DNA from: Dicyema japonicum
Taxonomy: Eukaryota > Animalia > Dicyemida
Assembly: GCA_011109175.1 (NCBI GenBank)
Contig: RDEW01000082.1
Span: forward strand, 67,876-131,875
Direction: 5' to 3'
DNA: 64,000 bases
Shown here: positions 4,265 through 40,455 of the stretch, piece by piece
Position numbering within the stretch: the first letter of the stretch is position 1
Layout: every line of letters begins with the position of its first letter
Notes under the pieces: generated by a model
Seen by the model: only the letters and a program-made list of their open reading frames with translations
Told to the model about the DNA's origin: nothing
Databases searched by the model: none
Program-made: the position numbers and the translations under genes

Positions 4265-5600
4265 ATGAAAATGCTATTTTTCTATATTTTCTTTTTTGAC
4301 TGTTCTGGTAACTCGCTTGAATTTGGTAAATCGATGTTGACACTTTAAATAGAACCACAGGATATAAGAGCCAACTTTGAAGGTCATGGCTACTACATCT
4401 ACTACGATGACGGAGAAGAATTTATTCAAGAACACCATACGTTTGCATGTATGCCTCACTATCTGGCGATCATTAATAGCCAAGCTGAACTTAAGTTTTT
4501 ATCTTGTATGGTGATAGAGTTATTAAAATAGATTTACTAGACAAATATTTTTGGATAAACGGAAAAACATTAAATGGTGAGAATAAATTATATAATGGAT
4601 CTCGTATGGTTGAATTTAATAATCATCAAGCCTTATTCAAGAATTCTAAGTTATTATAATCAGAATAAATCTTACGGAATATATGTAGAATCATGTTCAT
4701 TAGAAATGAGAGTTCAAAATATCAACACGAAGATGAAAGGTGTTTGCGAAAAGGGTTAGATATATTTTTTGTTTCAGATACCATATTTTCTGGAGCAAAG
4801 AGTTTCAAGGCGAATGAATTTGATAATATAACCGAGAGAAAATCTTACTTACATACAATGAAACAGGGTTTATAGGTTCACATGAAAATATACAATACTT
4901 TTACTACGATGACCACATCTATATGCATATAAAGAAATATATGACTATTAATGAAATTACCAAGAGTGCACAAAACACTCTGCTACCCTTTTATTGATTA
5001 AGAGTCAATCAGAGAATGAATTTGTTGGGAGTATTTTCTATAAATATAAACTCAGAAATTATGTCCGGAAGCTCATTTATTGGAGTTTCCGTTGATGTGG
5101 GTTATCAAAATTGGCAATGTGATGATGCTAAAAGAAAGGTGCAAAACTCTCAAACTCCAAATGCAGCAGTCATGGATCATTGTAATGGTCATTGGAGATA
5201 TATTTCTGATAGACGTGAAATTCATTATGGATTATGTGTGTCTAGTTTAATTCTTTACTAATTTTTAAAGATAGCCTAGATTTATTACTGACTCTAAAAT
5301 TCCTATTTCCTTTTCCGTCGAGTTTTAAGTTTGAAGAGATTTTAAAAAATTTCAACAGAAACTCTACAGCTATAAATAAAGGAGCTTCAACAAAAGTTAA
5401 TTCCACATCTTTAACTAAAGAAGCTTCAAAAGGGGTTATTTTAATATTGATTTTAGAGCTTTCAATGCAGAAAAATCATATTAGTAAAAATATTCTTTGT
5501 AATCTTTTTCTCCAGTATCGCCATTCAGTCATTGACAGTTCTCTTGATTGATAAAATATTTAAAAAAGGACATAATGTATGTGTCATCACTAACCAATAA
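4265..5600 (+). CDS. Tandem C-type-lectin-like domain type I membrane protein, paralog 1
   Basis: Seven GT-AG micro-introns (e.g. 4326-4352, 4506-4531, 4609-4630, 5435-5456) give signal peptide MKMLFFYIFFFDCSG, domain 1 (YLAIINSQAELKFLS..FWING..GVCEK), domain 2 (ATLLLIKSQSENEFV..SFIG..CNGHW..GLCV), TM IILVKIFFVIFFSSIAIQSLTVLLI and tail ending TNQ*. Two single-base deletions are needed near 4858 and 4963. Confidence 0.75.
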
Positions 5601-6179
5601 TTATAATTTCTCGGTAGTCCACTACTAAATCTCGGATTTCATGTTAATTTTTATTTTATTAATACTAAGTAGCACAAAAAATTATGTCAGAATGCACTTA
5701 TTATTGATCTTTAGGTTGCATTCAGATTATATGTTCTTGAAGAATACTCCCTACGCTGTAGCCAATAAACCAAACTTCCCCCTTTTCAGTGAACCACCTA
5801 AAATGTTGCTTTTAATAGCCATGAGATCGCCCAGAGTTGCCGTTCTCATGTTTCTTTGAATCAAATCTCACGTGGATCCTTGATGACCCTTTGGATCATG
5901 GAGCCCGACAGAATAGATCTTCAGCTGCTGGACCAAGGATTCCTGATATCTCAACAGCAAATGTGACAAAAAAGTGATCCTCCGTAATGCTTCAGTACTT
6001 CCTTCTCTTCTGATCCTCGGCTTGCTTAGAAGCATGACCTAGATCCGAGAGTGAAGCGGCCTAATTTGGCTATTTTTCAGATTGTGAAGGTAATAAATAT
6101 ACTATTTTCTTGGTAATGAATATATATTTTTTCATGTAGTTAGTTAATAGCACTCCCGCGTTGCCATAAGCACGTAAAA

Positions 6180-6580
6180 TGCCCAGGGTTTCGCTCGTGC
6201 CGTACACTCGACTATCCTCCCAGTCAGCCTCTCATCTAGCTCAGTTCCTCACGTGTTTACTAATATCCTCAAGATCGTCTCCAGTTTTGAGTTGACCGCC
6301 AATTCGTGCGTGATCGTTGTTAAGGCAGAGGGGAAGCATACATCTTGGCCCACCTCGAAATCCAATTCCATGATTTGAATAGTAATCTCCATGATTTGAT
6401 TGCAAGGAATCACTTCGTCCATTCTCAGAACATGTCCGAAAAGTCGCCAGCGTGAGGTAATTACTTCTCTGCTTATCGGTTTGCATTTACATAATTTGTA
6501 GAGAGTGTCGTTTTTGATAATCTGTGGCCATTTGATTCCCGCAATTTTTATCAATTGATTGCTATGAATTTTTTTCATAT
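6180..6580 (-). mobile_element. RTE-clade LINE 3' fragment
   Basis: IAGIKWPQIIKNDTLY..RWRLFGHVLRM, a typical RTE ORF C-terminus. Same family as 26690-26880 and 62862-63260. Confidence 0.75.
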
Positions 6581-6599
6581 ATCAGAATAAAAAAATGTA

Positions 6600-7100
6600 A
6601 TACGTATACTTTTACTTCATTCCATGTGTAAAGTACCTTCCATAAATTCACAAAATTCCCTTATCCATGTAATTCAAAATAAGGCTTTTCCTATGATAAT
6701 GCTTAATGTTCTTGATTATGCCTGCATCCATTGGTTGATGAACAGTTGTGTTTTTTGGAGGAATAAAAATTGATTTCTTTCCTTTCTATCTTTAAATGAA
6801 ATTGTTTTAGAAGGGAAAGATTGAGATTCAGTTCACCATTGTTAAGAAAAAAAATTTATATGAGATAATTCACAGTCATTTTTGATGTATTTTGCTTTCA
6901 CAGATCATTCTTTTCTATGAAATATAAAATTCTTACCTTTTTTAAACCACGTGGCACAACAAGATTTTAAATTTAAAATGTAAATTCAATTAAATGTAGA
7001 ATAAAAACAAAATAAATTAATTCGAAATTATTAATAAATGTCTTTCAGATTGGGAATAAGAAAGTTCGGATTATTGAAGTTCGGATTGGGGGTTTACTGT
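6600..7100 (-). mobile_element. pogo/Tigger-like DNA transposon remnant
   Basis: The minus strand reads PPKNTTVHQPMDAGIIKNIKHYHRK (pogo DDE motif). Terminus CAGTAAACCCCCCAATCCGAAC ends at 7100 next to TA. Confidence 0.65.
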
Positions 7101-7479
7101 ATTTACCAATAAACTTATTTTAATTAATTTAAATAAAAAACGTGTAACTTTTCGATGGGACTTGTATAAAAATATAATATAAATAGAACTATTTATTTTA
7201 TAATATTATAGGATCCACTTAAACCCTTGTGTTTGCAATTTGCTGTGGATTTTTCTGATAAAGTGATGAAGCTTATTAGAATAAGCAAAACGCATACATC
7301 CTCAATCACTAGGAAAAGATATTGAATTTTTAGAAGACGCCTCATTTTTTGAAGCTGAGGTTAATACAAAGGTACTTTTTGGGCCCGAAGCACATAACAT
7401 GTCACGGGTCATTCCTAAGGCAACGATTGGCGTCGAGCTTCTGAGTCCCTTTTGACTTTGTGGATGATGACGTGATGAC

Positions 7480-8720
7480 TTACTTGACAAGATAAGGATG
7501 ACATACCCCCTTGACGCACAAAATAGAGCGCTTCACAAGCGGAGGGGGGAGACTCCGAACCATCAAGGTCTGACTTCGTTCAGGTGGCGAGGCAGAAAGG
7601 ATCTGCCTGTAGAAGGGTCACTTTAGGCTCGGTGTGACTATAGAGCGAGCTACAGGAATCCAGTGCTAAAGCTGCTAAGGATTCGGTCACACCAGATCCC
7701 GATGTACTTATAAAGAAAAGTGCCTAAATTGCGAAGCCCACATTCGCGGAAGGCCTGCCAATCAAAAGACAGGTATCTCAAGTTCGTGAACTATGGCGAG
7801 GCAGAACACAGGGCGAGCCATTCAAGATGCCCCCTGTAACAAAAGGCTATTGATAAGTTACTACAGTTGAGAAGGCATGCGCCCTCCCCTGGATTGGTTA
7901 TTGATGTAAGCACTATCCATCGCATGGTAAAAGGTTATCGCTGCACTACCGGATCTTCTTTCCCAAATGCTCTTGGGGATACCGCGTTGTGGTATATGAA
8001 GGAGAATGCGCCGAAACAATGCTCAACATTGTTTCGATGAAAGTCAGGTCCCTCTAGAGGAGAAGGATGGCTCTTCTTGATACCCTGGAAGCCGACATCT
8101 TGTCCTCAACGAGACCAAGTGCAAGGATACGGTTGCTGCAGACTTTAGAGGCTACACTAGTTGTCATCTCTTATGGAATGATGCACAACGAGGTTTGGGC
8201 ACTAGTATCCATTGGAGAACGAGTCTCGCAGCAGTCGTCCAAGGTACCTCATCCTGTTCTCATTGTGACTTATCTTGATACGCGTTAGGCTACCCTGTTT
8301 TTCAGTTGTTATTGGGGCAATATATGACACGCAGTTGTGGTTGTGTTAGGATCACATTAAGACTGTCTTCGACATACATCCCCATTGCGTTGTATTTGGT
8401 GATCTGAATGCTAGCCACTCAGCTGTTTCCGCAATAATAAAGGGGGATCAGCTCTACACGACTGGCTAGAGAGAGTGTTAAAGAGTAAGAGTTATCAGAA
8501 GTTGATGAAATAAAAAGAATGATGAATGAATTCGCACACAGACTGAAAGCCGAACATTCGGAACGCATGCGCCGCATTCTTAGGCTCGCTGAAAAGTTTT
8601 CATTTTTGATAAATCTGGATTCACTTGATGCTGAAAACAAGGGACATTTGACATATCTTCTCTCCACGAAGATATCGTTGACAGTTTTTTTTCGAGGTGG
8701 AAACAGTACTGCGAAGGAAC
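7480..8720 (+). mobile_element. Degenerate LINE: ORF1 zinc knuckle and APE endonuclease remnant
   Basis: KCLNCESPH..C knuckle near 7725 and VVFGDLNASHS near 8395, with many stops. Confidence 0.55.
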
Positions 8721-10406
8721 AGTTACATAACTAATCGATGAGGATGAACTAAGGAATGCTCTTCACTTATTTTTTTGTTGTTGGATGTGAGTCCTCTATA
8801 GAATATCCTGTTCTGCAGTGAGGAGTTCACTGATGACGACCTCTCTCGTCAAGCCAAAAGTATAAAACATTTTATACCATTTGGATTCCCAAAGTATAGC
8901 TTACCTTTTTTATTTTCGACCTTATCAATATATTCACGACTGTTCCCCCAATTGTTATTGTTCTTCAATAATTCTCTGTAGCCTGTCATCTTATCTCAAA
9001 AAATATCCCCATTAATTAAAAATTAAAATTATTTTAAAGACCAAGGATAACCAAACTAACTAACTCCTTGATTCTGACTCGTTGCAACATTCCAGAACTT
9101 GTCTCCAGTTCACGACATTGTCCACCAGAAAAGAATAGTTGGATCCTCTTGATGCCGGCCAGGAATTGGGCGTCTCTACAGTGAGGTGGATTTAATGATG
9201 CCATCGGAAGGAAAATAATTTATGACCAACTAGCCACATAGCATCACACGGCGCCACACGCCAAATTAAAAAATTAATGAAAACAACATACATGACCTAC
9301 ATGTTTCGTCAACCACAGACATAACTAAATTTGAAGGATTTTTACTCCCACTATAAATTACAGTGTAATCTAAATCAATGCATCCACAACGATCCATCAT
9401 CAAACGATATGGAATTTTGAGCCCAGCTATATCAATATGAGTTCAATAAACCACCAGTCTGTTTGGACTAATTTTTCTCAAAGCAGAGGATCAATTAACT
9501 TGGCTACTAGAGTGACGTCATGTCTTTTTTAAAAAAACTAGATGATCAATGCATCAAAAGTTTTAACGATTGAGATATTTTAGTTGAATAAAAATATACA
9601 TTTCGAATCTAATTGAATTTCACAGGAACTAAGTAGATTTTCGTCTAAATAGGTTATTCTTATTCAATAGGCTCAAACTCATATATTGCCCATTCTTCTA
9701 TAGTTGAACCATTGGACGTTGTATAAGAGTCTCACGCACTTTAGTCTCCATAAAAGGTCGAGAAAAAGGGCGTTAAAAACCAAGGAATATTGAATGGATC
9801 ATATAAAGCATTACACGTTTTTACAAGAGTCACATCATCACCTCTGACATCTTCACTGGCAAATCGGTTGTGACTACTCTATAATATTTGGAGTTGACTT
9901 TAGAAGAATAAGGTTCAATTCAGTTCTAGTTTTTTTTAATGACGCAAATCAGTCAAGACATCCATTCAGTTTAAAAGAAACCAATAACTAACGATAATCT
10001 CGAAGAGAATGCAGAATACTGGAGATCCAATGATAAGGATACCGTTACTCATTTTCCGTAATCTCTTCAAACCTTAAAGACGACTTTTTGTGTTTCAATA
10101 CACTTATTTCTGAAGAAATCCTTATGGGATTTGATTCTTTGAGCGAAACTGATCGACAACATTACAATCTTAGATAACACCATATTCAGTAAAATATAGG
10201 TCAATCGTCGATCATCGCTTATTTAACTGGTGTTTAACTGATGGACTCCACAATCGTCTCAGAATAATTTTAATGATGCAAGTCAAGAGAACTGTCAATC
10301 AAAACCTGTCAAAACGAACAAAATTAATTCCTGAAAATTGACAAATTTTTTTTAAATTCCAGAAAATAGATTTTATTTATAAATCAGATTTCGCTTCACG
10401 ATTAGA

Positions 10407-11650
10407 ATGCGATACTTCTATATTCTCCTTTTTGACTTGATTCAATTTGGTAAATCAATGTTAACACCAAATGATATAACAGCGAACTTTGAAGATCATG
10501 GCTATTACATCAGTAATAAAGAAAATGGTCAAAAAGACTTTATGCTTTCATGTATGCCTGACAATCTGGTGATCATAAATAGCGAAGCTGAACTTATATT
10601 TTTATCTTGTATGGTTTTAGAGTATTTAAAATAGCTCTATTGAAGACAAATTTTTGGATAAACGGAAAAACATTAAATGGTGAAAATAAATTATATAATG
10701 GATCTCGCATGGTTTGGAATTTAATAATCATCAAGCCTTATTCAAGAATTCTAAGTTATTATAATCAGAATAAATCTTACGGAATATATGTAGAATCATG
10801 TTCATTAGAAATGAGAGTTCAAAATATCAACACGAAGATGAAAGGTGTTTGCGAAAAGGGTTAGATATATTTTTTGTTTCAGATAGCATGATTCTTGATC
10901 CTAATACTACCGTGGAGAATACTAAAACCAAGAAAATAGTATTTACAGAGAATTTAGGTCCAAAAATACTATATTTTTACAACTATGACCACATCATTTT
11001 GCATATTGTGGAATATATGAATTTTACTGAAATGACCCAAAAATGCACAAAATACTTTGCTACCCTTCTATTGATTAAGAGTCAATCTGATAATGATTTA
11101 GTTAACGGTATTTTCTATAAATATAAACTCAGAAATAATGTTCGGAAGCTCATTTATTGGAGTTTCTGTTGATGTGGGTTATCAAAATTGGGAATCTGAT
11201 GATGCTAAAAGAAAGGTGCAAAACTCTCAAACTCCAAATGCAGCAGTCATGGATCGTTGTAATGGTCAATGGAGACCTATTTCTGATAAAAGTGAAATTC
11301 ATTATGGTTTTTGTGTGTCTTGTTTAATTCTTTATCAATTTTTAAAGATAGCCTGGATTTATTACTGACTCTGAAATTCATATTACCTTTACCGCCGGAT
11401 GCAAAAATTGACATATCAAAGTTCAAAAAAAGTCCAAACTCTAAATGTGTAAATAAGATCGACGAAAATCTTAACTCTATAACTAAAAATAAACAAGTTT
11501 CAAAAGAAGTTAATTTAAGATTGATTTTAGAGCGTTCAAAACAGAATATTTATGTTAATCATAATATTCTTTGGAGTTTTTATATCTTGTTTCGCCGTTC
11601 AGACATTGACAGTTTGCTTATCCTATCAAAAATTTAAAATCGAAACATAA
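10407..11650 (+). CDS. Tandem C-type-lectin-like domain type I membrane protein, paralog 2 (frame intact through the TM helix)
   Basis: Same micro-intron positions as paralog 1 (22-26 nt, e.g. 10860-10882). Reads signal peptide, two CTLD-like domains, stalk, TM IFMLIIIFFGVFISCFAVQTLTVCLSY, then QKFKIET*, with no frameshift. Confidence 0.8.
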
Positions 11651-12099
11651 TGTATGTGTAAAATTAAACTTAGTTCATCACTAACCAATAATTATAATTC
11701 TCGGTAATTCACTAATAAATCCTGGATTTCATGTGATTTTTTATTTTATTAATAATAAATAGCACAAAGAATTATCTCATAATGCACTAATTATTTATCT
11801 ATTGGTTGCATGCAGATCATATGTTTTTGGGGAATACTCCCTATTATTGTAGTAGTAAACCAAACTTCCCCCTTTTCAGTGAACCGCATAAAATTTTTCT
11901 TGTAATGGTTACAAGACTGGTCCGAGTTATCATTTTCCGGTTTCTTTGACTCGTATGTTGTTGATATTACAATTGTTTCACCCCATCTGTAAGTCATCCA
12001 CTTATTACATGTTTCTGACGAGGTGATAATTTTTTTAATTACGGATTTTTTAATTATGATAATTTTTTTCAAATAAAAATTATAAATTATTAATAGACT

Positions 12100-12557
12100 A
12101 GTCGATAATCCAATGACAGAAGAAGTTGTCAACTTAGACATGGAACTACCCACTGAAATCCCAAAGATTGGGAATCATTTCTCGTTGAGCAATACCAAAC
12201 AGTCTCAGCTTCTGAGAATAATGACAGTGACTCAGATTCTGATAAGCAAACAGAGCCAAAACAGAGAAATTAACACGCACAAATGTTCAACAAATGCTAG
12301 ATCAAATCTGCCACTTTGCTTGCACTCAAGACCCTGCATTACTCGATCCCGTCAACAGACTGATTTATCTTAACAATAAAGAGATTGCTGAATCGAAGCA
12401 AAATACGAGGCAATCCTTAATGACAGATTTCTATAATCCTACTGTTTCACTTTTTCGTTATAAGTAAATTTAGTGACTTGTTCAATATACCGGCCTCCCC
12501 TCTATACCGGACAATTCTGTCGGTCCCGAGAGGAATCGGTTTAGAGGGATTTGACTG
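12100..12557 (+). mobile_element. pogo/Tigger-like 3' end
   Basis: KQNTRQSLMTDFY (like the Tigger C-terminus) and a terminal ..GATTTGACTG followed by TA at 12558. Confidence 0.35.
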
Positions 12558-12700
12558 TAATGTCATATTCGTATTCCATGTGAATTGATTAACGAGTCTA
12601 CCAATATTTAAAAATTTGGTTGCAGCCCGGTACCCAGTGGCGTGCCTAGGGGGATAGGGGTAGCCACCTCGGTTTCATCATAAACAAGCTCGACTGCAAG

Positions 12701-14008
12701 AAGGGTTGTTAGATTTAAATCATTTGATTTTAATCAACAAAAAATCAATGATTTAAATCATTAAAAAAATTAAAAAAATCATTTAAATTTTTTAATGTCT
12801 GAAAGAAAGCTGATGCATTGTGGGTTCACTTTGATAAACGTATTATTCCTGGAAAGATTGGGAGTCGAGCCAAATGCCGTAAGTTCGGGAAGGAGGTACA
12901 AGGTCTCGTATCTCGGATGAGGCAGCATCATTTGTCATGTCGAACTAATATTGATATCTTGAAAATCCGAGAAAACCTGAAAGTGATTTGATCAGCGACT
13001 TCCACCCTAGGATGAGGGACAAGTCTTTAATCAATTTCATTTCTACGACGACGCCATCGAAGAAAGATTAGATTGATATGCAACTCGTTAGATGCATATT
13101 TTCCAGTAACACTACATTTGATGCTCTAGAACATCCAGAATTTATCAAATTCGTTTAAATGCTTCTCCCTGGGTATCGATTTCCATCTCGTCATCAAATT
13201 GGAAGTCCATTGTTCGATCGTGTGTAAGAACAAATACATGAAGACTGTCGGCAAAGACTCTAAAGACAGTGTCTATGATGTTGGACGGGTGGACAACATT
13301 CATAATGAACCTGTTATTTGTGTGTCAGTTGTAACATCGGATGGGGAAAGCTATCTAATTGACACTGCGGCTGATTAAACCAATTGCTGTCGCTTTAGAC
13401 AAAATTCAAAATGATTCTACGACGATTAGTCATGCTGTAGAATTTGGATAGAACTTGAACAGACTTATATTGACTATGAATGTACGACTATTTTAGAAAA
13501 AGTGAAAACTCGAGCAGATCAAGCATTAACACCTTTCCACTTACTTGCGAATTTAATGGACCCAACACGTTGTGGGTGATTTCTTTCAACTGCTGAGATT
13601 GACCTCGCCTTGGATATTGTGCTGAACATTATGAATATGCTCTTCCGACTCTGATTAATTTCAGAGCAAAAGCTGTTCCATTCAAACTATGTTCGCTCCG
13701 AATTTATTGAGCAAAGTATCACCTATAGCTTGGTGGGAGTCGAACTCTTACCACCTTCTGAAGTATTTCACTCTGCAAAAAAATTCTTGGAGCAGTTGCT
13801 TCCACAGGTGGAATAGAACGAATTTTTTTCGTCTTTTGGATTCCTACATTCAAATGTATGAAATAGGCTGGGAATTGAAAAAGCTGCTAAACTTGTCTTT
13901 GTTTACAAGCTTTTAAATAAATAAATACGATTTCCAATGTTTTTATTTTAATTTGTTTCCGAATAAAAATCATTTAATTCAAAAAAATCATGATTTTTAA
14001 CAACCCTG
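12701..14008 (+). mobile_element. Decayed hAT transposon with BED zinc finger
   Basis: TIRs (A/C)AGGGTTGTTA at 12701 and 14008, and an 8-bp TSD ACTGCAAG/ACTGCTAG. Coding remnants LWVHFDK..AKCRKFGKEVQGLVSRMRQHHLSC, FHLLANLMDP and PIAWWES. Confidence 0.85.
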
Positions 14009-16640: not shown

Positions 16641-16748
16641 TGGTTGTGGTTATGGCAATATTAAATAATAATAAAATAGCACTGAATTATCTTTTATTAA
16701 TCAATAAATATTAATTGTGTTTAATTTAAATGAGACTTTTGTCGAGTC
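16641..16748. promoter_or_regulatory. Putative bidirectional promoter between BBS8 and NDUFS2
   Basis: A 108-bp AT-rich spacer between divergent ATGs (16640 minus, 16749 plus). Confidence 0.55.
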
Positions 16749-18273
<1,525 letters not shown>

Positions 18274-18913: not shown

Positions 18914-18985
18914 GGGGATATGGCTTAGTGGTAAAGCGCCCGCTTAGCATGCGGGAGGTCCTGGGTTCGATTCCCAGTATCTCCA
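18914..18985 (+). tRNA. trnA-AGC: tRNA-Ala (AGC)
   Basis: Full cloverleaf with stems GGGGATA/TATCTCC, GCTT/AAGC, CCCGC/GCGGG and CTGGG/CCCAG, loop TTAGCAT, TTCGA T-loop and a T6 terminator. Confidence 0.95.
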
Positions 18986-19010
18986 CTTTTTTATCTGATT
19001 ACTTTAATTT

Positions 19011-19319
19011 TTTTTTCAGAATAATTTTTATATTCCGAAAATAATACTTTAATTTTCATCTTTTTTTAAGTTTTTCGGAGGAGTATATATTTGTTCCATT
19101 CGCGGTGGAAACGTCAGGAATCCTTGGCCCCCAAGCAGATGAGTTGGTTCGTAAGATCGGCTCCATGATTCAAGCTGTGACCAAGGATCCGCGAGAGACT
19201 GGTTGGTTCCGAGAACGTATCTCGTTGGCTATTGTTAGGGGAAATAGCATGGCCATTCAGATGCCTTAATTTTGAACTCTTTTTCATTATAATAATAAAT
19301 AGTAAAAATACTTTAATTT
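19011..19319 (+). mobile_element. 5'-truncated CRE-clade insertion downstream of the tRNA
   Basis: Encodes FVPFAVETSGILGP..WFRERISLAIVRGNS. It is absent from the paralogous locus near 38640 and bounded by TACTTTAATTT at 19000, 19045 and 19309. Confidence 0.8.
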
Positions 19320-19419
19320 ATTTAAAAAAATACTTTTGGAGAGTATTTTTCAAGTTTTATTATCAAATGCAAATATCATGTAGCCCCTTTTATAAAAATC
19401 CTTTCAAAAAAAGAAAGCT

Positions 19420-19930
19420 ACTACGAATTTTGAGGATTGGATTCGGACAAAGAGTAGGACTAGTTGTTTGCTAGGACCACCGATGCCGCTGCGTAAAAAT
19501 AATCGATGCGAAGGGATTACACCCGCTGTCCTGCAGATGCAGAAGAAGTGTCGGGAGAGGACCACGTCATGCCGCTCTGAAAGATTTTATCGTCAGAGCT
19601 CTAAAGGCTACAGGCTTCTCGTCACAGCTTGAACCCGTAGGTTTCGATCGAGGCACGAATTTGGAACCTCCTTAAATCGATTCAGACATATGGAGCAGCA
19701 ATAGCTGAAAACCTAAAAATCAAAAAATATTCTTGCCTCGGAGACCGGTGCTGCTTTACTCCTGTTGCGGTCGAGTCATCAGGGGCCGTTGGTCCAATGA
19801 CGGCTGAGTTCTTGCGCGAACTTTTGAAAAAGAGGGGATCAACGAGAAAAGTTCTGGTTTAGACAAAGGATTGAATTAGCCATACTCCAAAGGGAACTCA
19901 TCTACACAGCAGGATTCCTCAATTAACATT
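19420..19930 (+). mobile_element. CRE-clade RLE-domain fragment
   Basis: RHVMPL..GFSSQLEPVGFDR..FTPVAVESSGAVGPMTAEFLR..IAILQRE motifs across frames. Duplicated at about 38000-38500. Confidence 0.7.
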
Positions 19931-19989
19931 TGTTTCTTTATCAATTTTAAACCACATTTTATTTAACCAACAATAAAAAGTTAATATTT

Positions 19990-20340
19990 AATAATCAACA
20001 ACCTTCCTCTCCAGCCTCCTCAGGCAGGTTCGATTCTGGTTGCTGAAACAACGCCGAGAGCGCCTTGTCCAATTGAATCCTCTGCCCATATGGCATCTCC
20101 GGGCTCTGCCTCTTAAACCCCAGTGTCAGACTCTCTAGGATCCGCTTTAATACAGTGGACTGTAGATAGTCCCGGAGCTTCTATCTGCCCCCCCCCCAAC
20201 TGCTTCAGATAACCCTTGTGGTACTTTGTTGCAATTCCTTCCCACGTCATTACTATTGGAATAACAAGGACCTTGCAACCAAGCATCTGCCCCATCTCGT
20301 TTGCAAGCAAATCATTGAATCCTCCACCTATTCATCACAG
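19990..20340 (-). mobile_element. R4/Dong-like RLE LINE C-terminal fragment
   Basis: CKVLVIPIVMTWEGIATKYHKGYLKQL. Second copy at 37640-37960 (+). Confidence 0.6.
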
Positions 20341-21690: not shown

Positions 21691-22631
21691 CTATTTTGAC
21701 ATAATTTTGAAAGACCACCGCTCCGTCATTCTGAAAGCCTTCTTTTGAACGTCCTCAATCTTCTTAGTGTTCGTCCATGATAATGAAGGTCTCCACGAAG
21801 CACACGCGTACGAGAAGCATGGTTCGATGTATTGCTTGTAAATGTTCATCAAGACTGGGTGGGTACCTGTCTTCCATATTCCAGATAAACATTTTAATAC
21901 ATTGATCCTCTTCTCGTACTTCAGAACAATGTTTGCCACGTGTGGTGACAAACATAGGTGTGCATAAAGTGTCACGCCCAGGATCTTCTGACATTTGGTG
22001 AAGGGGATTTCAATGTTGTCCAATTTTAACTTGGCACTCATTTTCCTCAACCTTTTGTCCGAAGTAAACATAGACGTGACCGACTTTCTGGAATTTATCG
22101 CGAGTCGGTTCTTCATTACCCAGGCGTTGAGTCGGTCCAGGTTAATTTGTAATCTTTCTGTAGCATTTTGGATATCCCGATCACGCGAGGCCAAACAATG
22201 TCGTCTGCATATGAAAGTAGAACATTGTTATTGGATTCCGGTGTCGGGAGGTCTGCCAGGTATAAATTGAATAAGGCGGGGGATAAAGGAGATCCTTGGG
22301 GGACACCGTTTGGGAGAAGACGTGCAACTGATTTCAGTCCTCCGAGGCATACACGTCCCCTTCGTCCACTTAAAAAATTTGTTATCCAAATTTTAAACTT
22401 CCCCGGGATCTCGGACTGGAAAATTTTCTTTGATAATATTTTTCTCGAAATAGAATCAAAAACCTTGTTAATACCAATGGAACATAAGACTGTTTTCAAA
22501 TGCCTTGGTTTGTTTGAAAAACCATCTCTAATGAAGTTGGTTAATTTCTGTAGGTACGTTGATGTAGAACAATCGCTCTTGAATCCGTGTTGAAAATTGA
22601 CGGGTAAATGCCATAATGGAAATTCATACAA
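21691..22631 (-). mobile_element. LINE reverse transcriptase fragment (APE-type, I/Ingi/Jockey-like)
   Basis: HGFKSDCST, GVPQGSPLSPALFNLY, YADD and KILGVTL. Confidence 0.9.
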
Positions 22632-29500: not shown

Positions 29501-29829
29501 CATATTAATCGATATTTTTCATGGTTTTCATCGAGATAGTACGTAATTTTCGTCTCTTGTATACAGCCAATAGAAACGTTATATTTTTCTAGGTCATCGC
29601 AGTGTATTTCTTGACTAAGGCTTAGATATTTCTCTAGCATTGAACGTAAGAAGCTTTAGGGCAAGCATATTCTTTTGTATCTTGTGCTTTCTAGACATTT
29701 TTATTAACCGTTGTACAGAGAAGAAACGAGGCACGTCACCACCTTATGACTCCTTGTGAGATAAATAAAAGTAATGTTCTAATGAGAGGCCAAATTAACG
29801 TAAAAATTTACTTTACTTTAATTTTTTTA

Positions 29830-30380: not shown

Positions 30381-30589
30381 ATTAGGTAGCTTATGGTAGT
30401 TGATAGAGTCGTTGTACAGTCTTGATAGTATGGCCCGTACCTGAGGTCCAAGGTGTTTGAGGTGAATAGTGCAAATACCGTCGGGACCACAAGCACGAGT
30501 GGGACGTAGAATTTAATAGCCTTGTCAACATCATGGAGGGGTGAAGAAGATGGAATACGGTTATTGTTGCGGAAATGAAAATCGAAAAT

Positions 30590-32330
30590 CGGCACTCATG
30601 GGTTGACAAACTTTCAATCCAAGTCTGATGGAGACTCCGGTGCGGACCGTTTCATCGTCTCGGTGAGTTCCCACGTTTCCAATGGGTAGGGCATTGATCT
30701 AAGCCCCGCTCCACTCGCATCTTGCAGTTAAAAGACAGGCTCGTCGGTGTTGGTTACATATTTTCAAAAGCCTCTCGTATTTATCCTCGCAGACAGACTC
30801 ATAAAGGTCTCTCTGCCCGGTTGTTTGACTTTAGGGTGTACCAAATCTTCGATCTTTGACGACTCTGATGGGAGCTGGAGAATCATCATGATCAAATTCT
30901 GATTGGAGTCCAGTGAGGATTGATATGCCGGGTGTGCTAAATCAGATGGTGAGAGAATTCCGAGTCCAGCAAAGCGAACGGGCAAGGTCGCTTGTTCCCA
31001 TCCTTGTTCGTCGAATTCGACATTAGTAATACGTTCTGTCGTAGACCGGAATAGGGAGTCAATCGCCCCGAGTTGTTGCATTTTCAGGTAACATGGAGCT
31101 CCTCGAAGGACGTAATTTAATTTCTGCGTGGAAAAAGCGTTTTTCATGAGAAAAAGAGAGGTATGTGCATCCAGCATCCCAAGGCGTAAAAAGGTTTTTC
31201 TTAGTTGCTGTTCTTTAGCCAACAGAGTGTCGTTAATTCCAGTTTCAGCCAGAGGGCATCCAAGTATTTCCAAATGATCCGGCTCGATTTCCGATTTTAG
31301 GAATAAACCCCCGAAACATTAATAGGATCTGATTCCATTCATATCGGGAGAATCCATAATTAACAATTTCGCATTTGGATGCGTTTAGCATTAAACCAAG
31401 CGTATCCAATTGGGTTAGTAATCTCTGTAGACAGTCATATACATTGTTAGGATGATTCCCAGGGTACAATCATCCAAATACCACACGTTCAGCGGAGTAG
31501 TAAGGCATCTCATGACACGGTCGACACCGAGCAGAACAGTGCCGGTCCTAGTAGGTCTCCTTGCTGAACCACACGACGAGGGAATGAAGTATTTCCCATG
31601 TACAAGACTGGACGGTTTTCCATACGAACAATGAACATAATTATATATAGACGGGTAATGGGTAAGACAATCTTCCAAAATTACATCGCGTCGTATGGTA
31701 TTGAAGGCGTTTTTTATGTCAATCTTGAGGACCACACAGGGCATGTTCGTTCTGTTTCCAGTAAACATCCGAACGGCATGAACCGCCGCATCACATCCAC
31801 CAGGAGTACCGACCCCTACTTGGGTTGGTCGCATTTGTTTGACAAGCATCGGAAGGATTGCTCTGCTAGCAAGTTTAGAAGCCATCAACGAAAAACAAAC
31901 CCAAAGCAATAGGACGAATTCCTCCTCCACATTTATCAAAGGCAATTAACTTGGCGGAAAACATAATATGACGGATTGCTTCTGGTAATCTTCCGGAAAG
32001 CATTCTGTTGATTAACCTCGTTATAGCCGATAATAGCCGAACACCAGAGTTCCCCGTATTCTGATCAATTAGGTCTTTTAGGTGTCCTGGACGGAGTCCG
32101 TCAAGTCCCCACTGCTGCTTGGGGCGAATGAGAGATCGCATCTTTCACGTCCCCCTCAGAAATAATCAGACTAGGTAATTCTCCAGAGCAAGTAGGGATC
32201 TGTTCGTCCACTGGCGGACCTACTCATTTATAAGGATATTGATCCTTCTTAGCGATTTCCATAATGTGGCACAAGAGTTCTTGTGACATAGTCGTCCAAC
32301 AAGGCGGCTCCATTTGAGTCTGTTGTTAGT
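30590..32330 (-). mobile_element. CRE-clade retrotransposon, RT region (frameshifted)
   Basis: GLDGLRPGHLKDL, KCGGGIRPIALG, QVGVGTPGGCDAAVHA, LKIDIKNAFNTIRR, WYLDD and QATLPVRFAGLGI. Confidence 0.92.
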
Positions 32331-32559
32331 TCATAATAAGTTCAGATAATTTGGTATTCAGTGAACGTATGGAATAGAAGGAGTTATTGGTCAGCAATCT
32401 ATTCTTCTTCAGCGCATCTCGCTTCTTGATGAGTGACACTATTTGCGATGATAATCTTGGAATTAACTTCCTGTAAGAGGCGACAGGTATAAATAGTTTA
32501 TCATCTTTTAAGATGATAGCAGACAGAATCTTGCCGTCTTATCTACTCTACAATTATCC

Positions 32560-33350
32560 ATGGTAAGGTCAAGGAGACTATTGTCCACATACGCTCTGAA
32601 ACCTAGCCAAAAAGCTTTCAAGTAACTTTTTGAACTTTGTAGAACAAAACGGTAAACAAATAGGCCTTCTTTGTCTCAACACAATGGGGTTATGGTCGCT
32701 TGAGAAACCATAACGAACATTCCATAAAATACATCAAGCAGAGGAACAGGTCCAGGGATGTTGGAATGTCTCTTCTGCGGGACGTGGTCCTTGTGTGAGC
32801 GTCATGGTCATTGAGGATAATCAAAGTATTAAGTAAAGAGAGGATGAACGCGCCATGATGTCGACTGATTGTGTCCGGAGCCAGAAAGGATGTTTGGCAT
32901 TTAGGTCTCGCATAGTAGCAGATCCTTTAGTCTACACAGTTTCAATAGGTCTGGGATGTAAAAAGTAGTACATGATCCCTGAGCGGGATATAGACATTAC
33001 ATAGTGTAAAACATCTCGTAGAAGAAAATAGAAATCTGTTCCAGAATAAGATCCCCTTTGCAGAGAAAAGGTATAGAATGGGTGGCATAGTCAAAAGATC
33101 CGTCCTGTCAATCAAAAGACCACTCAATCTCATTATGTGAACGAACTAAGTTAATTTCTAAAAATTTTGGAACGGGGTAGTTGGTAGGCTACCTACTTAA
33201 GATCGCAGGAAGGGAAGGAAAGGTGAACGGTTCTCTTCCATGCAGAACTAGCACTGAACGCCACCACTACAACAGTTGAACCTCATGACGCCAAGTTTTT
33301 TGCTAGTTATGGAATGGCCACGTTTGCAGGAAATCTCTAGGTCCACAAGA
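32560..33350 (-). mobile_element. APE-type LINE 5' region, inverted partner of 35480-36125
   Basis: Shares RCFTLCNVYIP..GSCTT and the 33200-33340 block with 35500-35640 in reverse complement. SDHNPI near 32690. Confidence 0.7.
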
Positions 33351-34031
33351 TTAATATATCCAAATAGCCTCCATCTTGACTACAAGAGCCCCATGAGATT
33401 GAAAGTTAAGAAGGAACAGATTAGTCCTTGAATAAAATTTATGAATGATATATTTTGCTTAATTAATAATCACCTTTATTTATAATGGCGACTGGAAAAT
33501 GTCAAATTTTTCCAAAATAGCAAAAAATACCAGTATATTTTTTGGAAAAAAAGTAGAACAAAATTGATTATTAAATGTATTATTATCAAATGCAAATTAT
33601 GGGATTTTTATTAACCATTGGACGTTGTATAAGAGTCACACATCATTTAATTTCACAAAAGGTCGAGAAAATGATACTAAAGCCAAGGAAAATTGTTGGA
33701 TAGCATAATTCTCCATCTTCTCCACTTCGCTCTTTCTGAGATGTACTCAGAACCATAGATTTGCAGCAACGCAAAGTCGCATACTTATTCCTGAAGGATT
33801 CGCACAATTATTGCTGATCGCAGGAATTCTCATGAGATTTGATTCTTTTGACGAAACCGATCACAACATTAGCTATCTTAGATAAAGCCATATTATGTAA
33901 AATTTAGGTGTCCTGTAATCAAAAGACCAGTCAATCTCATTATGTGAACGAACTAAGTTAATTCCTAAAAATTTGGCACATTTTTTAAATTTCTGAAAAT
34001 AAATTTCATATAAATCAGATTTCGCTTCACA

Positions 34032-35298
34032 ATGAGTATGCTATACTTTTATATTCTTTTTTTTGACTGTTCAGGTAATGATTGGTTTCATTATGGTAAA
34101 TCAATTTTAATACTTTTAATAGATACAAATGAAATACAGGCTAACTTTGAAGGTCATGGCTATTTTTTCCCTAGCGTTGCAGCTTTTCAAACAAAAATAA
34201 AGTATTCATGTAATGATGACTATTATTTGGCAATTATTAATAGCCAAGCAGAACTTGAGTTTTTATCTTGTATGGTTTTAGAATTATTAAAATAGCTCTA
34301 ATAAACAAATGTTTTTGGATAGACGGACGAATGTTGAATGGTTCATATGTTTTATTTAATGGGTCTTCTATGGTTTGGAATTTTAATTATCATCAAGCCT
34401 TATTATACACGTACAAGTGGTTATAATCCCAATAAAATATACGGATTTTTTGTAGATCCCTGTTCTAGAGAAATGCGAATTAGAGAATACCACATAGTGA
34501 TGTTTGTTGCGTGCGAAAAAAGTTTGATATATTTTTAGTTTCAGATTCCATGATTCCTGGAGCTAAGACTGTTTCAAATGAATTTGGTCACGAAACCCAG
34601 AATAAAGGGGTATATCAATACATTGAAACAGGTTATATTGGTACAATAAGACGTTCACAATATTTTTACTACAATGAGCGCATCTATATGATATTTATGC
34701 AATATTTGAATATTACTGAAATTATTAATGAATGCAAAAAAGAATATGCTTTACCTGTCTCGATTAATGATCAATTAGAAAATGATTTTGTTCGTGGTAT
34801 TTTATATAAATATAAACTTAGCAATTATATCCGAACGCGTATTTATTAATACATTCGTTGGACTGGGTTATCATAATTGGGATTCTATCAAGGATAAAAA
34901 AAAAGTGCTAGACTCTGGAACTCCTTATGGAGCAGTTATGGACCTTTGTACCGGTAAATGGAAAGCTGTTCTGACACTAGTAAAGGTCATTTCGGACTAT
35001 GTCAGTCAAGTTTGGTTCTTTGTCAATTATTAAAGATCACCCGGAAACATTAAGGCAATTGGAACACTTTTTTGATTTTCGTTTAGATTTTTTGAACACA
35101 TCGGAGAATACATCTGTATCTGAGTTTAACAAAAGTAAAAATAATTTAAACAAGGTTTTTAATATTAATATTTAGTTGGTCAAAATTTTCTGTGGAATTT
35201 TTTTCTCCAGTTTCGTCTTTCTGTCGTCGTTTATTTACTTAGTTAATAAAAATTTAAAAAATGACATATTAAACTTAGTTTTCCCAACGAACCAATAA
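34032..35298 (+). CDS. Tandem C-type-lectin-like domain type I membrane protein, paralog 3
   Basis: Same seven micro-intron positions (21-27 nt). TM LVKIFCGIFFSSFVFLSSFIYLV and tail ending TNQ*. One missing T near 34969. Confidence 0.78.
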
Positions 35299-35479
35299 TT
35301 ATAATTCCTTGATAATCACTTAAATAATTCTCGATTCCATGTTAAGTTTTATTTTATTAACAATAAATAGCCCAAATAATTATGTCAGAAAGCACTAAAT
35401 CAATGAAATAAGTTTCATTCGAATCACCTTTTCTTGCATAAAAAATTTCTACGATTGTGGAATCCAATTCTAAACCCCT

Positions 35480-36125
35480 GGAGGCTATTTGGAAATACAA
35501 TTCTTGTGGACCTATAGATTTCCCGCAAACGTGCCCATTCCATAACTAGCAAAAACTTGGCGTCTTGATGTTCACCTGTTGTTGTGGTGGCGTTCAGTGC
35601 AAGTTCTGCATGGAATTGAACCGTTCGACTTTCCTCACCTTTCTGCGATCTTCAGAAGGGTGGCCTACCAACTACCCCGTCTTCTCTTTACTACTTCTGT
35701 CTAGTGATGTAGAACCTATTCCGGGACTCAACTGCACGCTGACTATTCTACAATTAAATGTAAATAGAATCCGCAATATAGTGTTGGATTTACGATCCCT
35801 CTTATCCCATTTGAGAATAGAAGTTCCTATTTCGTCCCCAACACCTTGTTATCTTAAATATTGTGTACTTCGCAGGGACCGATCAAGAAATCTCGGAGGA
35901 GGATTATTGACTATCGTTAAGGATGGGACTTAAATTTACGGATGTCACCCCTTTTGTACCTTCTTTCTGCGAAGGGGATCTTTTTCTGGAACAGATTTCT
36001 ATTGAAGTCCCGTTTTCTTCTACGAGATGTTTTACACTATGTAATGTCTATATCCCGCCTCAGGGATCATGTACTACTTCCTACATCCCTGACCTATTTA
36101 TGACATTACTTCTTATGTCTTTTAA
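35480..36125 (+). mobile_element. APE-type LINE 5' region
   Basis: LLLLSSDVEPIPG, LTILQLNVN and RRDRSRNLGGGLLTIVK. Confidence 0.75.
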
Positions 36126-36129
36126 AACA

Positions 36130-37330
36130 CTGAGGTACCTATAGCTATCATTCCCATCAAGACATTTCACTTCATTCATGGATTCAAGAAAGGTTGCCGA
36201 ATTCGAAATAATATATCTTTTTCATCATTATATCAATCATATCTTCTTTCTCCGCAGATATCTTCATATTATCGCCACATAATAAATAATTTGTTGAATA
36301 CTTACCACTGGCAAATAGATAATTTTTAAAACTTATTCTGGATTTTGCACAACGGATCCATTACTAAAGCAAAAAAGTGGAAAAACAGTGAGTCTCCCTG
36401 GAGTATTCCACGCTTCAATTCTACTGTCTAATCCTTTCCATGTTTAAGTTTACGATTATCTCCATTCAGGTAGTTAGACTCTTCACGAAATATCTTATCC
36501 AACTTGGAAGCCCCGGGCATTCCACATTGCACAAAAAATCGTGGTAGACTGAATGTTTTCTTAACGTCGATCCAAGTTGAAATAAATTATGCTCTCCTCG
36601 ATTCATGAATTGTGAGTTTTTTTTTCTAGTACACTTATTTTGTGAGTAATGCACCTACTCTGGTAAATTCTTCTTTTCATGAGTTCTTATAAGAAGTTTA
36701 TTTATCATATTTACATATCCTCATTACACTGGCCTTTCAAGTCATTAAGGAGAAACAGATTTTCATTAAATACGGCTATCCACTTTTCGGTAGAATATTC
36801 TGTTTGTATAATAATTTGAGATGAGAAAGTTAAGATACTGGAGATCTAGCAAATGTCTTGAGGATCCCCATCTTTTTTTTGAACTCTTGAAATTAATGTG
36901 TCCACATGATGTGTGAACATCATCAACGGGTCATATGTAACTTTAAGGATTGATGGGTTCTTATTAACTGGGATAAGCTCTCCATTCAAGTTAATTTAGG
37001 ATCGAAAGATGTATGTTTCTTGTAGAAGGAGATAATCGCAGTGCTCGACTTACCAGGGGATATTTTCATGTGGTTTTTGAGAAACCATGGGTTCATAATG
37101 TCGAGGGTCTTCTGAACCCTTCGTGCTGCTTCATTATGCATTCCACCATGAACTCTAAAATATAAAAATGCGATCAGCCTCTTTACAAGATTGCACGCGC
37201 AGTCGGTTATCGTCGAGAAATGTAAAGTTTTCTCTTTCTTAAGATCACTTGGGTCAATGACATCGAAAGTGACCTGTAAGCGTCAGGCAATTGTATTACT
37301 GTTCCACAAAATTTCTCTGTCAATCTAAGG
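36130..37330 (-). mobile_element. R4/Dong-like RT remnant
   Basis: HDFLCNVECPGLPSWIRYFVKSL. Homologous in inverse orientation to 45600-46440. Confidence 0.6.
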
Positions 37331-37639
37331 AAGGAACGCAAAAAAGAATGTCTGTTTGTGCCAATTTAATCCTCCGATAGTCAATTGAGAGGTTGAGAGG
37401 TAGGCGCACCCTCTTCCTTTTTAATTATCTTTCATAACGGAAAATCTTCACCAGTGGATTTTGTCAAGGAGAGGGTAGGAAGATTCCTTTCAACAACTGT
37501 TTTGTGCCAGAAGGACTCGTTGTCTGAATTAATTTTATTTTGTGTGGTACACAATAAGGAGTCTACCCAATTTCTTATCATAGAGGTTGGCATCACGTCT
37601 CAACACCGTTTGCAGGCTGTGGAGGTGGAGAAAAAAGGA

Positions 37640-38740
37640 AGTATGACTTGCTTGCAAACGAGATGGGGCAGATGCTTGGTTGCAAGGTCCTTGTTATTTC
37701 TATAGAAATGACGTGGGAAAAAATTGCAAAAAAGTACCACAAGGGTTATCTGAAGCAGTTGGGGGTAGATAGGAATCTCCAGGCCTATCTACTGTATTAA
37801 AGCGGACCCTAGAGAGCATGACAGTGGAGTTTAGGAGGCAGAGCCCAGAGATCCCATATGGGCAGAGGATTCAATTGGACAAGGCAGAATCGAACTTGCC
37901 TGAGGAGGCTGGCGAACAGGCAGGCGAGGAAGGTTGTTGATTATTAAATATTAACTTTTTATTGTTGGTTAAACAAAGTGGGGTTTAAAGTTGATAAAGA
38001 AACAAATGTTAATTGAGGAATCCTGCTGTGTAAATGAGTTCCCTTTGGAGTATGGCTACTCCAATCCTTCTTCTAAGCCAGAACTTTTATCGTTGATCCC
38101 CTCTTTTCTCCAAGTTCTCGCAAGAACTCAGCCGTCATTAAACCAACGGCCCCTGATGACTCGACCGCAACAGGAGTAAAGCAGTACCGGTCTCCGAGGC
38201 AATAATATTTTTTGATTTTTAGGGTTTCAGCTATTGAAACAGCTGCTCCAAATGTCTGAATCGATTAAAGGAGGTTCCAGCTTCGTGTCTCGATCCAAAC
38301 TCACGGGTTCAAGCTGTGATGGGAAGCCTGTCTGAACGATAACATCTTTCAGAACGGCGTGACGTGGTACTCTTCCGGAACTTTTCTGCATCAGCAGGAC
38401 AGCGGGTGTAATTCCTTCGCATCGATTATTTTTACGCAGCGGCATCGGTGCTTTTAGCAAACAACTAGTCCTACCTTTTGTCCGAATCCAATCCTCAAAA
38501 TTCGTAGTCCGAATTAGTCCTTTAGTTAGGGCAAGTTATTCCACCAAACCATGCTACTTAATATTTGTGTCCCCTTGTAGCTTTTGTCTTAGTTCGATAA
38601 TAAAACTTGAAAAATACTCTCCAACGTATTTTTTAAATAAATTAAAGTAATTCAGAAAAAAGTGGAGTTACTGGGAATCGAACCCAGGACCTCCCGCATG
38701 CTAACAGGCGCTTTACCACTAAGTCAAATCCCCTTTTTGT
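37640..38740 (-). repeat. Inverted segmental duplicate of about 18900-20320
   Basis: tRNA, AT spacer, CRE fragment and R4-like fragment occur in the same order in reverse complement. Confidence 0.9.
38663..38733 (-). pseudogene. tRNA-Ala(AGC) pseudogene
   Basis: 71-nt copy with acceptor-stem mismatches (GGGGATT/TAACTCC), a D-stem mismatch and a 1-nt deletion in the anticodon stem. Confidence 0.85.
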
Positions 38741-39184
38741 TAAATCAAAAACGTAGGAAACCCTGGTTATTTTTCAACGTCGACTTTTCTTAAAGCAGAC
38801 TGGGGACGGATGTGAAGTCTAATTATATGTGCATCATGATCTTCAGTCTGAGAGAATTCACACGCTCCACCCTCGTAGAAGGAATGGAAAATCTCCAGGC
38901 AGAACAGGCATATTCAATTGTCGGCGCAATAACTTGGAGAAATAGTTTGCTGATACAAGCAGTAGGAGGGAAGGAGCTCTTCTTTAAGATGGCTTTTAGG
39001 AAGTTAAAAATTAAAATATATTTTTGTAAAATTAAATAAAATTTCTAAATTATTTTAATGATTTTAGTTTAAAACGTTAATTAAAAACCATCCCCAGTAA
39101 ATCATATTTGTATTCCGCGGAAAAAAATAAAACTTTACATGAAATCGAGAATTGATTAGTGAATTGAGAAATTATAAATATTGG

Positions 39185-40455
39185 TTAGTGAGGGGAACTA
39201 CGATTAATATGCCAGATAGATTTTTTAGAAACAATGTAAAATACCAACGACAGAACGAATAAAATGGAGAAAAAGATTCCACAGAAAATATAGAACAACT
39301 TTAACTGATGGTAGTAAATATTAATAATAAAAAACCTTTTTTAAATTCTCTTTACTTTTGTTGAACTCATTTAAAGATGTAGGCCTTGATATGTTCAAAA
39401 AATCTAATTGAAAAGAAAATTTTTTCCACACTCGCTTGATTATTTCCGGGTGATCTTTAATAATTGACAAAGAACCAAACTAGACTCACATAATCCGAAT
39501 TGTTTTTCACTAGGAACAGAAACAGGTCTCCATTTACCGGTACAAAGGTCCATAACTGCTGGATAAGGAGTTCCAGAGTCTAGCACCATTGATTTAACTT
39601 CATCAGATTCCCAATTTTGATAACCCCTTTCATCTGGAGCTCTAATAAATGAGTTTGCGAACATAATTTCTGATTTTATATTTATAGAATTACTGCGAAC
39701 AAAATCATTTTCTAATTGATTTTTAATCCATAAAAGAGAAGCATAGTTTTTTTTGCATTCTTCGATTATTTCATTAATATTATCATGTTTCATTATTTTC
39801 ATATAGATGTTGCCATTGTAGTAAAAATATTGTACTCATAGGCTTGTACTATATAACCTGTTTCAATGTATGAATTTTAGCCTTTTTATTGGTTGTGTGA
39901 GCAAAATTAGCCGCATTGGAAGTGTTAGCTCTAGGAATACTGGTATCTGAAACTAAAAATATTTCATACTCTTTTCGCACACTATAAACATATGATTATG
40001 GTAGTCTTGAACTCGCATTTCTTCAGAACAGGGATCTACAAAAAATCCGTTTGTGTTATTGGGATTATAATCACTTGCGCGTGTATAATAAAGCTTGGTG
40101 ATAATTAAAATTTTTAACCATAGGAGATCCATCAAATAAAACATATGTACCATTAAATATTTGTCCGTCTACCCAAAAAAGTTTGTTTATTAGAGCTATT
40201 TTAATAATTCTAAATCCATACAAGATAAAAACTCAAGTTCAGCTTGGCTATTAATGATCGCAATATAATATTCATGTGAAACACAATATGACCTTGATCG
40301 TTTTTGATTAGCTACAACGTTAGAAAGTAAATAGCCATGATCTTCAAAGTTCACCTCTATATTATTTTTTTCTATTAAAATGTCAAAATTGATTTACCAA
40401 AATAAATCGTGTTATAACCCGAACAGTCAAAAAAGAGAATATATAAGTATAACAT
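39185..40455 (-). CDS. Tandem C-type-lectin-like domain type I membrane protein, paralog 4
   Basis: Same intron positions (23-31 nt). MLYLYILFFDCSG signal peptide and TM LFYIFCGIFFSILFVLSLVFYIVS. Two single-base shifts in the inter-domain linker at about 39830-39890. Confidence 0.75.

Follow-up and report, generated by a model that had tools for sequence, protein, structure and literature searches.

What do four loci that pass for junk among the open reading frames (ORFs) of a dicyemid contig encode? They lie in a stretch of 64,000 nucleotides (nt) of Dicyema japonicum, here called the window (assembly GCA_011109175.1, contig RDEW01000082.1, positions 67,876 to 131,875 of the forward strand). 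A first-pass annotation had removed introns of 21-31 nt from each locus and read the same product four times over, a surface receptor with two C-type-lectin-like domains (CTLDs). We call the loci genes A, B, C and D in their order along the window (Table 1). Our analysis makes it probable that they are a tandem cluster of type I double-CTLD surface receptors with a non-sugar ligand, evolving by birth and death and under diversifying selection.

The four genes are true paralogs, which align over their whole length of about 1.3 kb with 79% mean column identity. When the spliced B protein was used as a tblastn query, it matched the window at A, B, C and D only. The earlier description as a “four-member family” is thus right about the number of places, but the count is valid for this window only and one of the four, gene D, looks dead. 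Once the introns are removed the copies share the layout first described for them: a short hydrophobic N-terminus, a CTLD, a linker, a second CTLD, a stalk, one transmembrane (TM) helix and a short basic tail. We propose that the cluster consists of four paralogous protein-coding genes of eight exons and seven introns of 21-31 nt each, and that each would encode a membrane glycoprotein of type I topology, about 355-390 amino acids long.

The case for these genes depends on the introns, which at this size are easily invented. Arbitrary removal of short GT..AG segments opens frames almost anywhere in AT-rich DNA such as this window (guanine-cytosine content, GC, about 37%), and a shortest-path search opened the frame even of the frameshifted gene A through non-homologous introns. 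We therefore rejected frame rescue alone as evidence for a gene, and the case for the introns rests on their shared positions and on protein-level matches. All 27 intron segments have GT..AG ends, fall within the 21-31 nt claimed for them and lie at alignment positions common to the copies. Setting suspected errors aside, the indels whose length is not divisible by three all lie inside introns I1, I3, I5 or I7. Exons 3, 4 and 6 have identical lengths in all four genes and the remaining exon indels are multiples of three. The intron originally singled out for its varying length is I3, and the lengths given for it were correct; its removal, whatever its length, leads to the same downstream reading in each copy (PYSRIL.. 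/ PYYTRT..). Intron segments have a GC content of 18-22%, as against 30-31% in exons.

Where a splice site has been lost, the frame has a way out. In gene D the original acceptor of I7 is mutated and the next AG, 10 nt downstream, preserves the frame. Gene B has lost the acceptor of I1 through a 12-nt deletion, and its positions 10450-10482 are either read through in frame or removed as a 33-nt intron ending at the next AG. The second of these alternatives parallels the shift to a downstream AG in I7 of gene D. Among animals, D. japonicum and myxobolid myxozoans alone are known to have introns of 21-31 nt (PMC13644364), and the mean intron size in D. japonicum is 38 bp (PMC6736024, PMC13644364) in a genome of 36.7% GC (PMC6736024). 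The putative introns of genes A to D appear to match the ultra-short introns reported for this species.

Evidence for the identity of the domains comes from profile searches. A profile of the four CTLD2 sequences gave 51 matches at E up to 10 against all PDB sequences, of which 50 are CTLDs; the best were PLA2R (3.6e-6), convulxin alpha (1.4e-5) and DEC-205 (6e-5). Against 1.84 billion representative proteins the same profile found 33 matches at E up to 1e-3, with a best value of 9e-17, and Pfam Lectin_C was present in all ten of these that were scanned. No close relative, below 1e-30, appeared among the 1.84 billion proteins. Features from a protein language model (ESM) placed Lectin_C in 90 of the 100 nearest clusters. 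A word-indexed homolog search with the 131-residue ORF of gene D returned no match, full-length relatives lying outside the length range of that search. For the first domain, a profile of exon 2 reached CTLDs in the PDB at 2.7e-5 and aligned to a CTLD profile with 94.7% probability (E 5.6e-8). The spliced CTLD1 sequences of all four copies scored 13-28 bits against a hidden Markov model built from outside CTLDs only, while 800 shuffled sequences scored at most 7.8 bits. These alignments are collinear and unbroken over the I2 and I3 junctions, which provides independent support for those two splices.

Structure prediction gave the same answer. An AlphaFold2 model of CTLD2 from gene D, made with an alignment of the paralogs and 18 outside CTLDs, reached a predicted local distance difference test (pLDDT) of 80.3 and a predicted template-modelling score (pTM) of 0.73; the modelled sequence includes eight intron-encoded residues in a loop. 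With this model as the Foldseek query, the top 50 PDB matches were all CTLDs at probability 1.00, with template-modelling scores of 0.61-0.74, and the best 30 matches in Swiss-Prot were all CTLDs as well, with CD302 at the top and scores up to 0.76. The fold is defined by two helices packed against two antiparallel sheets, in which the N-terminal strand pairs with the C-terminal one, and the predicted structure agrees with it. Both domains are C-type-lectin-like by profile, as had been claimed, and CTLD2 of gene D also by predicted fold.

They are not, however, C-type lectins in the strict sense, a group recognized by EPN or QPD together with WND at Ca2+ site 2. The first-pass annotation saw none of these motifs and we found none in any of the four proteins or eight domains. 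At the corresponding positions CTLD2 has ESD, DSI or QCD and WRP, WKA or WRY, and at the EPN position CTLD1 has NPN in C and D and NQN in A and B. The core CTLD residues are retained in all copies. All eight domains have cysteines C1 and C4, in helix 1 and the last strand, but none at C2 and C3; each has instead one cysteine in the turn between strands 3 and 4. The WIGL-type core motif is FWING, FWIDG or FWVDG in CTLD1 and degenerate in CTLD2 (FIGV, FVGL or FIRA). In CTLD2 about 14-19 residues of the long-loop region are missing, where a CTLD usually has the “W.W.DG” stretch. We propose that both domains lack a Ca2+/carbohydrate site and the canonical C2-C3 disulfide, and that the long-loop region of CTLD2 has been shortened. 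The absence of such a site leads us to predict that the ligand at the cell surface is most likely a protein or another non-sugar molecule.

The hydrophobic segments orient the product. Each protein has a single strongly hydrophobic window of 19 residues (Kyte-Doolittle 2.1-2.7) near its C-terminus, followed by a short basic tail; because this anchor precedes basic residues and the CTLDs are N-terminal to it, the topology should be type I. An N-terminal hydrophobic 9-mer occurs in each protein, with DCSG next to it in A, C and D, and N-glycosylation sequons are concentrated in the linker and stalk. The predicted plan is then a short signal peptide, two divergent CTLDs with a variable linker between them, a sequon-rich stalk, a TM helix and a cytoplasmic tail of about 7-19 residues, some of them basic. 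From this plan we infer cleavage of the signal peptide and location of the protein at the cell surface.

With this plan, the nearest characterized architectures are CD302 (DCL-1) and the mannose-receptor family (PLA2R, DEC-205/LY75, MRC1/2), rather than type II natural killer (NK) receptors. Like the proteins described here, CD302 and its relatives are type I, with N-terminal CTLDs, one TM helix and a short tail, and most of their CTLDs lack a sugar site. PLA2R and DEC-205 are also among the best sequence matches and CD302 the best fold match in Swiss-Prot. The likeness has limits: identity is 14-20%, the A-D proteins appear to lack the C2-C3 disulfide and have no conserved endocytosis motif, and they have two CTLDs where CD302 has one and the other receptors have 8-10. 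The mannose-receptor architecture, with a ricin-type domain, FnII and 8-10 CTLDs, is absent, as neither a ricin-type nor an FnII domain is present and the two CTLDs that follow the signal peptide leave no room for more. The comparison originally offered was with NK-type receptors (Ly49, NKG2, CD69, KLRB; group V). It is apt for the missing EPN/QPD and WND motifs, in receptors that bind proteins, and for multigene clusters with rapid birth and death; weak profile matches exist (E 0.006-0.1). It breaks down on topology, because NK-type receptors are type II, disulfide-linked dimers with a single C-terminal CTLD, found only in vertebrates, whereas A-D are type I with two tandem CTLDs.

Two other groups share some features with the cluster. 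Tandem CTLDs in lineage-specific expanded families are found among invertebrate dual-CTLD lectins, such as the lepidopteran immulectins and many CLEC proteins of C. elegans. Immulectins, however, are secreted and usually carry a sugar motif in at least one domain, while A-D are TM-anchored and have no such motif. Snake-venom snaclecs, of which convulxin and botrocetin are among the matches, resemble A-D, like other gene families of “accelerated evolution”, in having exons that evolve faster than introns and flanks, and their CTLDs do not bind sugar; in A-D, however, the intron conservation may just reflect constraints on introns of 22-27 nt. Unlike the predicted membrane proteins A-D, snaclecs are secreted and pair single CTLDs in domain-swapped heterodimers. 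CTLD receptors are very common in animals, and A-D are a divergent, lineage-specific addition to that class.

Are the genes intact? Taking the window sequence as given, removal of the introns leaves an ATG-to-stop open frame in gene B only, so that the claim of restored frames held for B and fell short for the others, which retain 1-nt breaks (one in C, two in A, and two plus an in-frame TGA in D). In our scripts frame breaks were read as X only. The assembly merged PacBio and Illumina data, with one paired-end and small mate-pair libraries (PMC6736024), and we compared positions 34032-40031 of the window with contigs from four DNA runs of one 2019 sample (one large, three small). Two of the five breaks proved to be assembly errors. 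The T that all contigs add after 34968, with an insertion depth equal to the total depth in each of the four runs, identifies the break in gene C as such an error and leaves its frame open; the C that contigs add after 39848 (G on the strand of gene D) does the same for the break in D at 39848/39849. An extra A after 35255 in the contigs moves the stop of gene C to 35262-35264 and gives a shorter tail ending ..NKNLKK. A 682-nt contig whose only difference from the window is at 39848 covers both the second break in gene D, near 39874/39875, and its TGA at 39836-39838. Both lesions are thus real in the reads, and a search for a splice alternative that would bypass them found none; D was probably inactivated recently and is probably a recent pseudogene. 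Gene A has 1-nt breaks in exon 5 at 4838/4839, in a run of A, and at 4959/4960, in a run of C. These resemble the proven homopolymer errors and A is probably intact; with X at both breaks it encodes 388 residues.

At 34968, 35255, 35320 and 39848 the window departs by a homopolymer indel of one base from all, or nearly all, of the DNA contigs. The compared stretch has about one such error in each kb of single-copy DNA, so an apparent frameshift in this assembly should be backed by reads before the gene is taken for dead.

Among the copies, the non-coding parts are better conserved than the exons. Pairwise identity is 83-94% in introns and 78-86% in the 5' flank (330 nt), but 65-81% in exons, and 70% of intron columns are invariant as against 45% of exon columns. 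Nei-Gojobori omega over the whole gene is 0.75-1.04; by region, CTLD1 has values of 0.64-0.80 and CTLD2 of 0.90-1.18, and the linker exceeds 1 in five of the six pairs. Codon positions 1, 2 and 3 have diverged equally, and differences at 0-fold sites equal or exceed those at 4-fold sites in all six pairs. Within the CTLDs, nonsynonymous differences per site exceed the differences in introns plus 5' flank in five of six pairs (odds ratios 1.7-2.2, p 5e-3 to 2e-6). B and C have open frames and differ from each other at approximately 35% of exon sites, whereas random substitution of B, simulated in 3000 trials, left a stop-free frame in 0.1% of cases at 10% of sites and in none at 17%. Near-neutral amino-acid rates, frames that have been kept and conserved non-coding parts together suggest diversifying selection on a functional protein. 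The rate pattern fits the diversifying evolution of a surface recognition protein and agrees with the original description of a diversifying family.

Genes A and B share a perfect tract of 169 nt that spans the 3' part of I3, exon 4 and I4, which indicates recent gene conversion. They also share a perfect tract of 59 nt, and their identity in 50-nt windows ranges over 61-96%, falling to 61-69% in places. We propose that the cluster evolves by birth and death, with B and C intact, A probably intact and D recently dead.

The duplicated unit comprises the gene together with 350-600 bp upstream and about 130 bp downstream, and the conserved flanks found by blastn and alignment are probably a promoter with 5' untranslated region (UTR) and a 3' UTR. 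A TATAAAT motif lies about 25 nt before the ATG in the conserved 5' flank. The core of this flank (4130-4264, 10270-10406, 33920-34031 and, on the reverse strand, 40456-40590) contains invariant blocks whose conservation exceeds that of the coding exons, and is a candidate shared promoter.

Several observations count against the interpretation given above. An omega near 1 and equal divergence of the codon positions are also typical of decaying genes, and the excess of exon change may be inflated if a constraint of their own, or gene conversion, keeps the tiny introns and the flanks from changing. Genes A and D carry unrepaired breaks. Splicing of the seven segments in vivo is predicted from the DNA, and the donor of intron 2 is ambiguous between a 23-nt and a 26-nt version, both in frame. 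The second part of CTLD1, exons 3-4 alone, has no match in the PDB and none by hhalign. AlphaFold2 fails when given the paralogs alone (pLDDT 45) and needs remote CTLDs for a confident model, so that the fold result leans on sequence homology and is not independent of it. With Pfam Lectin_C a single domain reaches no better than E 0.1, which does not pass the cut-off for that family, and ordinary annotation at 1e-5 would therefore miss the genes. Finally, the N-terminus of gene B has an Asp within its hydrophobic run.

Some of these points would also be expected if the copies were CTLD pseudogenes drifting neutrally, their open frames left over from recent duplication and permissive removal of short GT..AG segments. 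The real frameshift and TGA of gene D and the two breaks of gene A agree with such decay, as do the omega values and the equal codon positions. Neutral drift is nonetheless unlikely, because B and C have stayed free of stops at a divergence well above the one that destroyed the frame in nearly every simulated sequence, exon indels are multiples of three except at three unverified or pseudogene sites, two of the breaks were artefacts of an assembly with a background of such errors, and the core CTLD residues persist in every copy. That the repeated unit is the cargo or part of a transposable element is more doubtful by far, and we regard it as highly improbable. Inverted copies of two repeats stand on either side of gene C, and fragments of reverse transcriptase lie inside the cluster. 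The depth of the contigs, however, is about 300-1400 over genes C and D, as for single-copy DNA, and 1e4-5e5 over the repeats between them, which are 30-1000 times deeper. Moreover, the shared unit contains no mobile-element gene or ORF and no terminal repeats of its own. On depth and content together we rejected the transposon reading, which the first-pass annotation had named as one that would refute its own proposal.

If the genes encode working type I receptors, as we favor, more than one function comes into question. The proteins could be true lectins, with a non-canonical site that binds host glycans independently of Ca2+. Such sugar binding by CTLDs is known, for example in Dectin-1, the fold is present here and CTLD1 of C and D has NPN at the EPN position; with the classical motifs missing from eight of eight domains and the long-loop region of CTLD2 shortened, we think this quite improbable. 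A functional role in the animal's own biology is somewhat doubtful yet deserves consideration: the proteins could let its few cells adhere to one another or, like CD302 and the mannose receptors, take up nutrients from host urine by endocytosis. Uptake from the urine of the host is how D. japonicum feeds. The topology is type I, the best matches (PLA2R, DEC-205, CD302) are endocytic receptors, and YQKF, a YxxPhi-like motif, stands just after the TM helix of B. However, that motif occurs in B only, and fast amino-acid turnover is less expected of a housekeeping receptor for uptake or adhesion. The genome paper describes D. japonicum as a parasite with a body that is greatly simplified, to about 30 cells (PMC6736024). 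A role of the predicted receptors in host contact or immune evasion, as the earlier annotation had it, is conjecture. We hold it possible, tentatively, that this is a lineage-specific receptor cluster under positive diversifying selection which recognizes or holds the host renal epithelium or host molecules.

If that were true, the cluster would be the first candidate host-interaction gene family in the dicyemid phylum, one below the Pfam Lectin_C cut-off and so hidden from standard Pfam annotation of a 5,012-gene genome. Dicyemids have some of the most reduced genomes among animals, and to our knowledge almost nothing is known of the molecules at the interface between dicyemid and cephalopod kidney. 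A fast-changing cluster of genes for surface CTLD proteins would provide concrete candidates there. Our literature search found no paper that links dicyemids with C-type lectins, and the word “lectin” does not occur in the genome paper or its supplements (PMC6736024).

Table 1. Coordinates of the lectin-like genes and associated features in the window (intron lengths in nt)
Feature	Coordinates	Strand	Remarks
Gene A	4265..5600	+	From alignment and intron coordinates; signal peptide - CTLD1 - linker - CTLD2 - stalk - TM - tail
Gene B	10407..11650	+	365 amino acids; only copy with full open frame in window as given
Gene C	34032..35298	+	Open throughout once read-supported T after 34968 is added
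Gene D	39185..40455	-	Probable recent pseudogene
Gene B CTLD1	about 10482-10859	+	
Gene B linker	10883-10965	+	
Gene B CTLD2	10966-11321	+	
Gene B TM helix	about 11546-11620	+	
Gene B stop codon	11648-11650	+	
Gene A introns	4326-4352, 4506-4531, 4609-4630, 4755-4777, 5031-5055, 5245-5270, 5435-5456	+	
Gene B introns	10609-10634, 10712-10735, 10860-10882, 11108-11132, 11322-11347, 11509-11530	+	
Gene C introns	34096-34122, 34270-34295, 34373-34397, 34522-34544, 34797-34821, 35010-35035, 35155-35175	+	
Gene D introns	40372-40397, 40196-40221, 40094-40118, 39947-39969, 39670-39693, 39455-39480, 39305-39335	-	
I1 length			A 27, B lost, C 27, D 26
I2 length			26 in A, B, C, D
I3 length			A 22, B 24, C 25, D 25
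I4 length			23 in A, B, C, D
I5 length			A 25, B 25, C 25, D 24
I6 length			26 in A, B, C, D
I7 length			A 22, B 22, C 21, D 31
Gene-conversion tract	A 4612..4780 = B 10717-10885	+	169 nt identical
5' flank of A	3909..4264	+	Conserved; probable promoter and 5' UTR
5' flank of B	10025-10406	+	
5' flank of C	33909-34031 and upstream patches	+	
5' flank of D	40456-41052	-	
3' flank of A	5601..5730	+	Conserved; probable 3' UTR
3' flank of B	about 11651-11790	+	
3' flank of C	35299-35398	+	
3' flank of D	39121-39184	-	
Assembly error	34968		Extra T after base in every contig of all four DNA runs
Assembly error	39848		Extra C in contigs of three of four runs

The DNA between and beyond the lectin-like genes holds other features. 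The two inverted repeat pairs around gene C are 33172-33373 / 35479-35680 and 32944-33088 / 35942-36098; their copies are 85-88% identical, and the repeats are high-copy (depth 1e4). ORF fragments of reverse transcriptase (RVT_1) at 21691-22631 (-) and 31415-31945 (-) are probably decayed long interspersed nuclear elements. A repeat of about 1 kb occurs at 37643-38652 and 19306-20315 with 82% identity, and a weaker tRNA-like match at 38663-38733 (-; Rfam, 36.9 bits) adjoins it. Contig depth at 37.4-38.0 kb reaches 1e5-5e5 against a baseline of about 300, and this may be a very high-copy tRNA-related short interspersed nuclear element. A tRNA-Ala(AGC) gene is located at 18914-18986 (+). Downstream of the cluster, at 57357-57800 (+), a forkhead gene, evidence of an opisthokont and here animal genome, is marked by a 147-residue ORF whose forkhead domain is complete (Pfam E 1.8e-34).

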